In this document: in pieces, positions 4,703 through 11,729 of the stretch
Layout of the letters: each line of letters opens with the position of its first letter
Numbering within the stretch: position 1 is the stretch's first letter
Source of the DNA: Magallana gigas
Taxonomy: Eukaryota
Direction of reading: 5' to 3'
Assembly: GCF_963853765.1 (NCBI RefSeq)
Contig: NC_088856.1
Location: 20,522,001-20,586,000, forward strand
DNA: 64,000 bases
Translations under genes and position numbers: made by a program
The notes under the pieces: model-generated
Database searches by the model: none
What the model saw: only the letters and a program-made list of their open reading frames with translations
What the model was told of the DNA's origin: nothing

Positions 4703-4799
4703 CAGGTTGGGACCAATCGCCCAAATGGGATAGAATATCCCAAACGGGTTATTATGACCCAAACGAGCTATATATAGATATCCCAAACAGGCTACATAA
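4703..4799 (+). repeat. Left terminal inverted repeat
   Basis: caggttgggaccaatcgcccaaatggga...gctacataa is the reverse complement of 11633..11729, with 3 mismatches near the inner end. Confidence 0.97.
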
Positions 4800-4881
4800 A
4801 ATTTGGCGGTATATTTTGCACGAGAATTTCCAAAATACGCTTCTTTGCGAGGGATCTGGATTGCTCATAGGGGCCCAAGTT

Positions 4882-4953
4882 TATAAAAGGCAGCTGAAAA
4901 TTCGGTCCTCATAGCCTTAACTGATGCGGAAGTGCGAGAACATAAGGTGAAAA
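4882..4953 (+). promoter_or_regulatory. Putative TATA box and non-coding first exon of the transposase gene
   Basis: TATAAAAG at 4882..4889 and a strong donor GTAAGT at 4954. The acceptor at 5677-5678 lies just before ATG 5681. Confidence 0.55.
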
Positions 4954-5680
4954 GTAAGTCTCTTTTATATTTACGATTACATTTTCCTTGTTAAAGCTAT
5001 TTAAACTTCAGTTAAGCCATAATTACTCTTACCTGCTGAAAAACACGACTTCATTCCGCCATTTTGAAAAGCTTGCATGATCATGTGATCACTAACTGTC
5101 CAATTGAAGAGTGTTTTATAAAATAGGTCATATTTTCAAATAGAATGTATGGTGCGCCATAATGAGAATTATTAAATAATTTTATTAAAACTCTTGTATA
5201 TATGTTTTTGAGGAAACGTATTGAAAAATTTACGGAAATGTTGTTTGAAAGTTGTATAAACGTTTAAAAATCTATGTCACGAATGAATAAAAAGTGATGA
5301 AGGTTAACATACATGCATCATTATATTACGTTACCTATGTAAATATGAAAAATAATGTTCTTAGTGTTAATTTGTCTAAACATATTGCCAAAGTCATTAA
5401 ATCCCTATGAGCATGTTTACTGCAATTTATCTGTGATTTTAAAAATGTAATTCATCAAGATGATATTATGTGCAAGTTTGGAGTTATTAAACGGTACCCA
5501 GTGAATTTGATACTGGTGCATTCTGGTCCGCAATATTTATTGCTGATATAAAGTAAATTATGTTTATAAGATTAACAAATAAGATTGAATACACAATTAG
5601 TTACACATGTTCATTTATGTGAAACAAATTTTTGAGGCTTATATTTACCTTTATCTTATCTAATGATTTTTTATGTAGAT

Positions 5681-7045
5681 ATGCCCCCTAAACGCAAATG
5701 CAGTTGCAAACAGCATGTATACTGTTCAACCCTATTCCCAGACGACGAGGAGATTGTTCAGAGAATATCCGACAAAAAAATTAAAGTTAAAGTCGTTAAC
5801 TTTTTGTTGAAAAGGGAATTTATATTCCCACATTCTACCTTTTTGTGTTCTCTGTGTGTAAAATTTGCTGAGCAGTGTCTTCAGCACGAAGATGAGACTG
5901 AGGAGGCGGCTAAAAAGAAGAAGTTCAGTATTTTGGAGTATTTTGAAGAGTTCCTGGGGGCAGTTTCCAATAATAGACTAACAAGCGATCAGCTGTCTTC
6001 CTTATCATACGCTTTAGGTAATATATCCTCTAACTAACACCTGTAATATTTTACAAGCAACGACGAAATGAAATTTTATTATTTCAAAGAAAAACCAATT
6101 AACTAACTCTGTGTATATATTTTAAGGAGGCAATTATGCATTGGTATTGAATAAATATTTCATACTTTAGGAAAAACACAAACCAAAGCAGTTTACGAGG
6201 ATACTGTGACTTCTGGGAGCCAGTATAAAGATGTAGATTACTTGGAAACGTTCAATCTGAAGGGTAAATAAATAAATTATAGATAATAAACGCACATGTT
6301 CACCCCCCCCCACACACACACACCAACCCCCCCCCCCCCACCCCCACCCCACCCCACACACACACACATACACACTGTTATATTATTTATTGAATATATT
6401 TATATATTATCTATGATATAAATATTTATTATTATAATTGTGTGTCGTTTCAGACTGGTTGCAAGAAAGAAACCATGTTATAGTTAATTTCATCAAAGGG
6501 ATCTGCAACGATGCTTGTGAGGAAATTAGACTAGCAAAGACTGTAGAGTCTATCTACGGGTGTAGAAACAATTCCTTTGTTTCACCAATGTCTTTCTCTC
6601 AAAATCTGCTTGGGTATGTTTAAAATACAGCCACACACACACACACAAGTATTCACGTAATGACTATAATTGCAGTCAAATTACGCCTATTTTATTCAAT
6701 CTACACATTAGTACTGTGTATGTGATGTTTGCATAATTAATTATTTATTCTAATAAATCATTATCTCTATTTATGTTATCTAGATACTACATAACTGGTA
6801 GCAAATCCGCTTTGAGGATAGGGTGTAAGGGCAGTCCATCGGGATCCTACACAACAGTTCAGAACTGGATTTCAGAGCAGAGCAAAGACGCCATAGAATG
6901 CCCCCAAAACGCTGATGTTGTAACATTTTTTGACAATAATCAGGTGATAATAAACATAAACTTTAGTTGCAATAAGCTTATATTCACATATAATTCTATA
7001 TGTACGGTAAACGTTAAGGATTTTGGGGCAAATAATTGGATTAAA

Positions 7046-10100: not shown

Positions 10101-10661
10101 TGAAATAATTTTACAATCGTTTTATTTTTTATTTTTAAACAATTTATTTACAAAACTTTTCATATTTTTGTATAGGTCAGAGGAAACTTGAGTGCTGCTC
10201 TATGCATTTGTGAGCTTGATGCCGAATACGCTTACATGTACAATATTGATTTTGAAATCAATTGTTTTAGACAGTCTATCAGAGAATCAGGCTACATAAA
10301 TGAGCCGTTCAAAGAAAAGAGTCACACGTCTTTTAGTGGGAAATCCTTGGACCGTTCATTGACGGAGTTTCACGTAAACTCATTGCGACACCGCGAAGAC
10401 TTTATGAATTTTATTATCAACCACAGCCTCAGTGACAGAAAAAAATTTCCTCCGATTTTTGTTCTCACAGACGAAAGGACAAAAGCAGAATCCATTGTTA
10501 ATAAAACAAAACCCGAAATTATTAAGATAATTGAAGGTGAACTTGAGGATATAAACAATGAGAAAATCAATGCCGAGTGGAGGAAAGTTAAATCGAAGAC
10601 AAAAGCAGATATTCTTAAATTTTATCATGATGTTTTAAAATCGGAGGGCCGAAATGATTAA
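5681..10661 (+). CDS. Putative DDE-type transposase, 12 coding exons, 855 aa, distantly Academ/Transib-like
   Basis: Phase-consistent GT-AG exons: 5681-6017, 6171-6263, 6454-6613, 6784-6943, 7272-7492, 7609-7722, 7830-7926, 8018-8120, 8213-8353, 8469-8600, 8686-9209, 10176-10661 (2,568 nt, no internal stop). Motifs: FFDNNQ, VGCDGLPY, a C2H2-like CPDC..H..H insertion, PGLGHYE, GGDFILEAKN; N-terminal CxCxxH..CxxC. Confidence 0.88.
7051..7123. repeat. (CT)n microsatellite in a transposase intron
   Basis: Direct reading. Confidence 0.95.
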
Positions 10662-11587
10662 ATTTTTATATGTATATATTGCAATTTTTATGCTGACAAT
10701 TACTTGGAATGTTATTTTCCTTATCACATAATTGTAAATACACCTGTAAAACTTGCAATTAGAATATGTAAATGTTTCACAAATGTAGTATTTTTATCTG
10801 TATATATTGTATGATATTTTAAAAAAACAGTGTGATATGTAAATAATACTAAATATAAACTTTATTTATTTGTAAATATTGTATATATATATAATGAAAC
10901 ATCACATTATGTTACATCATAATATCATCATATTATATAATCAAAATTGTATATTTGTAAATATAAACTTTATTTATTTAATTTAATTGAAAACAATTAA
11001 TAAAACATATTCTTACTTTCTCTAGAAGAGTGTTTTTTCTCTTAAAAAATGATTGGCTAACGCTCCTTGATCCAACTTGGGATGGAACCTGTCTCCTGTT
11101 CTTCCCAAGAGTTAGATTAGAAACTTTTCCGCTTCTGCCATTTTTTCTCTGTTAAAAAATTTCAATGCAAATTTAATATATTAACGTCATATTTTATAAT
11201 ATAGAACGAAATCTAATGTTATTGGCGCATTTCATTTTCCTTATAAATTAATATTTTATTTTAGTCCTTCTGGTGCTCCATACAATAAGCTCTAAATTTC
11301 AACCACACCAAAGATCATAGCCATTTTCTGATTGGATAATTTGATCTCGCGAGAAGTTATTGTTTCAATATGTCTTCCATGTGTTAGTGTCGAAGAAAAT
11401 TACTTCAACTTTTGTTGATATTAGAACATAAAGGTAAGTTTAAAGAAAAACAGTTAAGGTCACCGTGCAAAAGGACTGACTCATGTTTTAGTAAATAAGT
11501 TTATGAAGTGAATAGGGATGAAAAATACGTAGAATTTAACTCAATCTACAGATAATGACTCAATTTCCTTACCAATGTACTCGACAT
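9248..11587 (-). CDS. Transposon-encoded MADS-box-like + PHD-finger protein, 4 exons, 211 aa
   Basis: Phase-0 GT-AG exons 11587-11573 (MSSTL), 11148-11017, 9867-9778 and 9646-9248. The spliced peptide SFFKRKNTLLEK|AKEIHETTGADCVLYLKSPGGTEYVY matches the MADS/SRF pattern. The C-terminus CRFC..WIGCSH..C..WVHALC..WKCPHH is a PHD finger. Confidence 0.82.
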
Positions 11588-11632
11588 CTTGCGGAAACAA
11601 GTCTTCTTTTTCTTGCAGAAAAAAAAACCGCG

Positions 11633-11729
11633 TTATGTAGCCCGTGCGGGATATCTATATATAGCTCGTTTGGGTCATAATAACCCGTTTGGGATATTCT
11701 ATCCCATTTGGGCGATTGGTCCCAACCTG
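11633..11729 (-). repeat. Right terminal inverted repeat
   Basis: Reverse complement of 4703..4799. Confidence 0.97.

Follow-up and report, generated by a model that had tools for sequence, protein, structure and literature searches.

Positions 4703-11729 of a 64,000-nucleotide stretch of the Magallana gigas genome (the window, in whose positions coordinates are given) hold an oyster element that poses the question of what kind of DNA transposon it is, as an earlier annotation of this DNA (the original prediction) had found its ends and target-site duplication to be a misfit to the known superfamilies. Its ends, genomic copies, gene and relatives suggest, with a probability of about 80%, that it is an autonomous and recently active cut-and-paste transposon representing a distinct lineage of a large and unnamed transposase family.

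Terminal repeats, copies and target-site duplications

The element is delimited by the following features:

4698..4702, no strand: left target-site duplication TTGAA, the same letters as at 11730-11734
4703..4799, + strand: left terminal inverted repeat, starting CAGGTTGGGACC, with 82 nt perfect and about 97 nt in total, carrying CCCAAAYRRG repeats
11633..11729, - strand: right terminal inverted repeat, ending CCCAACCTG
11730..11734, no strand: right target-site duplication TTGAA, the same letters as the left TTGAA

The tips of the element read CAGG...CCTG, with CAGGTTGGG as the left terminus and CCCAACCTG as the right one. At the left junction ...gaaTTGAA is followed at 4703 by CAGGTTGGGACCAATCG..., and at the right junction ...CCCAACCTG, ending at 11729, is followed by TTGAAgg.... 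Counted from the tips, complementarity is perfect over 82 nt, with mismatches at 83, 84 and 87 and a fading of similarity near 97, while a repeat search of the window returned arms of 102 nt with 96% complementarity. The 14-nt terminus occurs at two sites in the window, both of them element tips, against a chance expectation of 0.19 matches. The termini, the 82-bp perfect ends and the flanking TTGAA of the original prediction are thus confirmed at 4703 and 11729. Within the repeats, the motif CCCAAAYRRG recurs at element positions 18, 37 and 56 in both arms, with an extra occurrence at 80 in the left arm; its spacing of 19 nt is as expected for transposase binding sites, which makes these repeats candidate sites.

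In the 564-Mb assembly (29 contigs), 41 scored matches to the terminus were recovered, including four full-length copies on contigs C4 (the window), C9, C6 and C1, whose end stretches are 97.5-100% identical to those of the window element. The remaining matches belong to short elements of 185-1570 bp that have only the ends in common with the full copies. When ends were paired by script and their flanking 5-mers compared, identical 5-mers were found in 18 pairs, comprising 15 of the window family and three sister-family elements, and two more pairs had flanks agreeing at 4 of 5 positions. Given that chance identity of a flanking 5-mer at the local base composition is about 0.002 per pair, the 5-bp duplication is not attributable to chance, and the length seen at the window insertion holds over the other copies (18 of 18 clean pairs). 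The duplicated sequences include TTGAA, TTCAA, TTAAA, TTTAA, GTAAA, CTAAA and TGTAA; the counts by position (T in 14 of 18, T in 16, any base, A in 15 and A in 15) indicate that the target is a loose, AT-rich palindrome, TTNAA. Three sister families in the same genome, with 46-52% protein identity to the window family, carry repeats of 73-75 nt (98.6-100%) that start with CAGGTTGGG and are flanked by duplications of 5 bp each (GTAAA, TTCTA and CTAAA). The conservation of both the ends and the duplication length in these families shows that they are traits of the lineage rather than of a single family.

Two further observations concern the surroundings of such ends. A 513-aa open frame with the reverse transcriptase motif YADDMVIF (30-1571, + strand), apparently that of a retrotransposon of the long interspersed element type, suggests that the transposon lies in repeat-rich DNA. 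On C6, a pair of inverted ends of a related subfamily (89-92% identical) is found 37 kb apart (G000:C6:17233881-17270864; L010, L009) with TTAAA on both outer sides; this pair either marks a composite element of very large size or is coincidental.

The transposase gene, its family and its predicted fold

Eleven GT-AG introns join open stretches of the + strand into a single 2586-nt frame without a stop, whose predicted product has 861 aa with the ATG at 5663 as its start and 855 aa (MPPKRK...) with the one at 5681. The latter figure matches the stop-free 12-exon open reading frame (ORF) of 855 aa in the original prediction, and the motifs FFDNNQ, CDGLPY, GLGHYE and DFILEAKN that had been singled out there are all present in the spliced model, the exons of which are:

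5663..6017, + strand: exon 1, with the ATG at 5663 and a second in-frame ATG at 5681; PPKRK and a CxCxxH...CxxC zinc motif
6171..6263, + strand: exon 2, with in-frame GT-AG junctions
6454..6613, + strand: exon 3 of the gene model
6784..6943, + strand: exon 4, FFDNNQ, with the putative first catalytic Asp, D253 (861-aa model); FDNxQ is nearly invariant in the family
7272..7492, + strand: exon 5, with an intron position common to the sister families
7609..7722, + strand: exon 6 of the gene model
7830..7926, + strand: exon 7 of the gene model
8018..8120, + strand: exon 8, CDGLPY, with the putative second catalytic Asp, D423, invariant in 32 relatives
8213..8353, + strand: exon 9, C2H2 zinc finger (C440, C443, H456, H462; Pfam zf-C2H2, E 4.5e-4)
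8469..8600, + strand: exon 10, GLGHYEIN, with H485 in H-x-E-x-N; its G, H, E and N vary little or not at all
8686..9209, + strand: exon 11, helical insertion domain and DFILEAKNRKTK (putative catalytic E668, N671, K675)
10176..10661, + strand: exon 12 with the stop codon, a C-terminal tail that aligns with the C-termini of long relatives

The model is colinear with independent proteins over nearly its full length (residues 9-853 against P0054, 11-848 against P0125 and 13-706 against P0011), several of its intron positions recur in the sister families of the same genome, and in each of the four full copies exon 11 remains open, at 99-100% identity; these three observations support the gene model. 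Pfam searches with single exons recover only the C2H2 finger, which appears as CxxC...HxxxxH in the family consensus, and a weak match to DUF7451. Four of the six RNA runs listed (X15-X18) contain 54-70% of the sampled words, a proportion above the exon share in which transcripts and DNA carry-over are indistinguishable. Intron 4 contains a (CT)n microsatellite at 7045-7125, and similar CT runs are found in the sister elements.

The transposase belongs to a large and unnamed family, the core of which is partly covered by Pfam DUF6589 (PF20231). Searched against 1.8 billion representatives, a single exon of 194 aa retrieves 753 proteins at E < 0.001, of which 38 score below 1e-30, and all the named relatives, from Tegillarca, Mercenaria, Crassostrea virginica, Saccostrea, Pinctada, Argopecten, Mytilus and Haliotis, are labelled as uncharacterized. 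Word-indexed protein searches for two family alignments returned only unnamed bivalve and abalone relatives, and a family profile run against the sequences of the PDB returned only zinc fingers. In an alignment of 32 relatives, little or no variation is seen in the columns FDNxQ, CDGLPY, PGxGHxExN, DHHKxWQ, RRNNS and DFxLEExNRxxK. DUF6589 is matched by 14 of these relatives with E values no higher than 0.1 (best 2.1e-9), separate exons of the window protein scoring below the gathering score of the Pfam family, and RAG1_imp_bd, the N-terminal domain of RAG1, by six (best E 2.3e-11).

A maximum-likelihood tree of 33 proteins resolves two clades with 100/99 support. Every protein with an N-terminus resembling this RAG1 domain, also known as the Chapa domain, falls in one of them, where the domain exceeds the Pfam cut-off, and the window protein lies in the other, beside a Tegillarca protein. 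In the clade of the window protein the N-terminus is a short CxCxxH...CxxC stretch alignable with parts of the Chapa region; window exon 1 itself gives no RAG1_imp_bd match. The C2H2 finger is present in 21 of the 33 sequences, the window copy having H(5)H.

Some more distant members of the family were also encountered. An intronless and intact 898-aa relative (L031:6247-8943; G000:C7:42.146 Mb) is present as a single copy, is about 26-33% identical, matches DUF6589 and has no recognisable terminal repeats, and all of its paralogues are decayed; it may be a domesticated transposase. The single copies of the distant relatives P0044 and P0090, of a decayed relative on C5 and of this intronless C7 ORF gave no convincing terminal repeats or duplications. 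A 1087-aa relative of the Chapa-bearing clade, P0247, is found on near-identical Logan contigs of 4-5.4 kb (L054-L063) from many samples. All of these begin at the same CT repeat 195 nt 5' of the ORF, carry a second ORF of 155 aa downstream and look like transcripts, without transposon ends.

The AlphaFold2 model of the relative P0011, computed from the alignment of the 32 relatives, has a predicted local distance difference test score (pLDDT) of 88 and a predicted template modelling score of 0.78. Its strands and helices succeed one another as in an RNase H-like core. Strand one carries D244 and strand four carries D422 at its end; a long all-helical insertion comes after strand five, and E635 is on the last helix. 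The equivalents of its catalytic columns in the window protein are D253, D423, H485 and E668. In a Foldseek comparison with the PDB, the P element transposase came first (probability 0.99, E 0.013), followed by RAG1, ISCth4, Hermes and HzTransib. A second structural aligner likewise placed the P element first with a Z score of 12.4 over 368 residues, ahead of Hermes (9.4), ISCth4 (8.7), HzTransib (8.1) and RAG1 (7.7), and no closely related transposase is present among the solved structures of the PDB. Among Swiss-Prot AlphaFold models the P transposase (E 3.4e-3) precedes IS256-type, hAT-derived and RAG1 entries. The matching AlphaFold DB clusters are all uncharacterized and come from a lancelet (the best match), mussels, Glomeromycota, basidiomycetes, cnidarians, a sponge and a sea urchin, the basidiomycete ones carrying the DUF6589 name. 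By this modelled fold, with its RNase H-like core and helical insertion in the relatives, the window protein is a DDE transposase, and the original prediction of an intact and young DDE transposon is supported and can be extended to an autonomous one.

An antisense PHD-finger gene and a possible mechanism

The analysis also uncovered a conserved gene that was absent from the original prediction, read from the opposite strand of the last transposase intron:

9248..9586, - strand: PHD-finger ORF of 112 aa in intron 11 (Pfam PHD, E 6.6e-6, above the cut-off)

Its predicted zinc ligands are C37, C40, C54, C67, H72, C75, C93 and H96, in the pattern C-C-C-C-H-C-C-H. The three sister elements have a PHD finger at the same antisense place, with 45-49% identity and with all eight zinc ligands invariant; since intron DNA should be unalignable at a transposase identity of about 50%, this ORF appears to be under selection. 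Profile matches of the finger include those of Alfin-like proteins, BPTF, ING4, TAF3 and RAG2 (best E 0.0035; RAG2, E 0.21), whose PHD fingers are readers of histone H3 trimethylated at lysine 4 (H3K4me3). A PHD finger is also annotated in a sea-urchin protein related to the transposase.

These features are consistent with a mechanism in which the N-terminal zinc module of the transposase would bind the CCCAAAYRRG repeats, 19 nt apart in both ends, and the two transposon ends would be paired. Cleavage at the CAGG tips and transfer of the 3' ends to target phosphates separated by 5 bp would be carried out by D253, D423 and E668, and gap repair of the 5-bp stagger would generate the TTNAA duplication. 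The PHD protein might steer or limit this reaction on chromatin, its nearest solved relatives being H3K4me3 readers.

If the reading of the element as an active and distinct lineage holds, a very large family of uncharacterized and DUF6589 proteins would gain a mobile-element identity, with defined ends, a duplication length and a TTNAA target. An apparently active and intact transposon with long perfect ends would also be a candidate tool for the genetics of oysters and other molluscs, and a conserved gene lying antisense within a transposase intron would constitute an unusual layout for a DNA transposon. Given the Chapa domain of the sister clade, the RAG-like 5-bp duplications and the PHD partner gene, the lineage would further bear on the origin of the RAG1 non-core region and of the RAG1/RAG2 pairing.

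Placement among known transposons

The hallmarks of the assembly of CACTA/EnSpm, Mirage, Chapaev and Transib (CMCT) are 5'-CA..TG-3' termini and duplications of 2-5 bp (PMC12730594). CAGG...CCTG termini are found in the window family and in the three sister families, and the 5-bp duplications fall within the stated range. The zinc motifs CxxC and HxxxxH are matched in form: in the oyster family they stand side by side and build a single classical C2H2 finger encoded by a separate exon, while RAG1 has them about 200 residues from each other. Homology to the RAG1/Transib core was assessed with a set of 46 relatives of the RAG1-like ORFs of the genome, 20 of which were aligned. Local hhalign of the family core against the resulting 20-sequence profile gave an insignificant probability of 0.4% (E 0.16), and the Pfam RAG1 core (PF12940) is matched by none of the 32 relatives, as against 2.3e-84 for the genome's own RAG1-like ORF. 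By published descriptions, the lineage fits the loose CMCT hallmarks and none of the named CMCT groups. The misfit asserted in the original prediction stands against the published hallmarks of Chapaev and Academ and against the CAC start of Transib.

Several points weigh against regarding the element as a distinct and active lineage. The family may already be named in Repbase or Dfam. Both the joining of the exons and the mobility are read from genomic sequence, the modelled structure comes from a relative with 37% identity and no zinc-finger exon, and the putative catalytic residues are assigned by conservation and fold. The proposed CMCT link draws on hallmarks and motif layout, with the hhalign comparison to RAG1-like cores being insignificant. 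As for the antisense gene, the predicted structure of its finger is of low confidence (pLDDT 53), and the frame, for which two sister families show no clear start codon, may belong as a single exon to a longer antisense gene.

A more far-reaching interpretation, which we advance only tentatively and regard as improbable at present, is that the family constitutes a superfamily-level group of its own, being neither Chapaev nor Academ. It would be defined by a DUF6589-type core in two clades, one with the RAG1 N-terminal domain, and by a two-gene arrangement of a transposase and a chromatin-reading PHD protein parallel to RAG1/RAG2. Were this true, it would provide a living model of the type of element that supplied the N-terminal region of RAG1.

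That the locus is not mobile, being a host gene caught between inverted repeats, might be suggested by its many introns and intact frame, as in host genes. However, the four copies lie on four chromosomes with identical ends, different flanks and their own 5-bp duplications, and dozens of short derivatives have only the ends in common; these copy and flank data refute this interpretation, to which we assign a negligible probability. A less easily dismissed, though still somewhat unlikely, alternative is that the element is an ordinary Chapaev member (CMC superfamily, "N-RAG-TP" type) of an already known kind that has lost most of its Chapa domain. Kapitonov and Koonin (PMC4411706) report the Chapa domain, beside RAG1 itself, from no known transposon other than Chapaev, Chapaev3 and the RAG1-like TransibSU, and its presence in the sister clade above the Pfam cut-off therefore favours Chapaev. 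The mollusc (Aplysia) element N-RAG-TP is cited for the Chapa domain too (PMC8355894). Also in favour of Chapaev are the description of Chapaev families from Aplysia and from the lancelet, the latter being also the source of the best AlphaFold DB match, and the window module CxCxxH...CxxC that aligns with parts of Chapa. Other common features are DDE cut-and-paste transposition, occurrence in marine invertebrates, CA...TG ends, and C(2)C, xH and H(4)H motifs in the interval from the second Asp to the Glu. Nonetheless, published Chapaev hallmarks are 3-4-bp duplications, invariable CAC..GTG ends and motifs of the types C(2)C, LH and H(4)H (PMC4079192), in contrast to the 5 bp of all 18 pairs and the CAG...CTG ends of all four families. 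The oyster proteins, furthermore, have GH for LH and an H(4)H directly after C(2)C as a classical finger, and show no detectable similarity to RAG1-like cores, though Chapaev cores are reported as distant relatives of Transib. The reduced zinc module of the window protein and the antisense PHD gene also set the element apart from Chapaev, as judged by published descriptions. Either the family corresponds to the Chapaev of Repbase, with the window lineage as an atypical branch, or the Chapa domain is spread more widely than has been stated.

Rather unlikely, too, is an affiliation with Academ, in which the element would represent a lineage without XPG nuclease or helicase. The motifs DN, DQP, LH and E of Academ parallel those of the window protein. 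Like the oyster family, Academ comprises large elements of several kb and is abundant in bivalves, where a strong amplification and a mean element length of 5.6 kb are reported for it (PMC10294476); it is reported as most abundant in rust fungi (PMC5751038), to be compared with the fungal DUF6589 proteins. Yet its duplications are of 3-4 bp (AcademX) or 9-10 bp (AcademH) and it encodes an XPG nuclease or a helicase (PMC10045372), whereas the oyster element duplicates 5 bp, Pfam searches find neither enzyme in it or in the 32 relatives, and the whole genome holds only five XPG_I matches. One curated bivalve Academ consensus starts with TAG, unlike CAGG. As a weaker point, among the entries listed in the portions consulted of a bivalve library and supplements (PMC10294476, PMC10799480), neither the terminus, the protein motifs, six versions of the DHHK codon string nor DUF6589 is found. 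Kapitonov, moreover, described both Chapaev and Academ. He states that the Chapa domain occurs in no other transposon (PMC4411706). The abundance of Academ in bivalves and rust fungi is circumstantial support, and the comparison with Academ is one of descriptions.

A divergent Transib/RAG-like transposon is a far less probable identity. Both groups make 5-bp duplications and have an RNase H-like core with a helical insertion, a CxxC about 17 residues after the second Asp, an H-x-E-x-N corresponding to H-x-D-x-N in RAG1, an E-x-x-N-x-x-x-K corresponding to E-x-x-N-x-x-x-R, and a PHD partner, the PHD finger of RAG2 being the counterpart. The best hhalign path pairs the family CxxC with RAG1 CTLC and GxGHxExN with RAG1 DATHADIN, and it also brings the E-x-x-N-x-x-x-K/R motifs of the two families into register. 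Against this stand the insignificant profile comparison, the absence of Pfam RAG1 matches among the 32 relatives, the ranking of RAG1 and Transib below the P element and Hermes in fold (in the second aligner), the AT-rich TTNAA targets and the ends, which start CAGGTTG rather than with the heptamer-like CAC of Transib and RAG termini. The parallels to RAG1 are a resemblance of layout and not proof of kinship. Of the original proposal of a distinct lineage within an Academ/Transib/RAG1 clade, the distinctness is supported by the ends and duplication kept in the sister families, and the profile, Pfam and fold comparisons with RAG1 and Transib do not demonstrate the clade membership. The genome does harbor two intact RAG1-like frames of about 1015 aa (L048:373-3420 at G000:C2:53.47 Mb, and L049 at G000:C9:44.6 Mb) with the RAG1 core (2.3e-84), RAG1_imp_bd and a RING finger, and a third, decayed copy at C6:37.21 Mb near decayed copies of the family studied here.

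Among systems of solved structure, the P element transposase (PDB: 6p5a, 6pe2) is closest; it too has a DDE core, which is preceded by a helical DNA-binding region and carries a large insertion behind its fifth strand. The likeness is at the level of the DDE core only: identity is 8-9%, there is no sign of a GTP-binding insertion in the oyster family, Pfam finds no THAP domain in the window exons or the 32 relatives, and P elements make 8-bp duplications as opposed to 5 bp. Pfam DUF6589, both core halves of which are matched by 14 of the 32 relatives and by the intronless paralogue, is a family of unknown function with mostly fungal proteins, and differs in having no transposon ends, duplication or mechanism attached to it. 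The PHD protein of the oyster element recalls RAG2, although it has 112 aa and no kelch propeller. The family is linked to the RAG world in another way than the original prediction proposed, by the RAG1 N-terminal Chapa domain of its sister clade, with a motif layout that also parallels that of RAG1.

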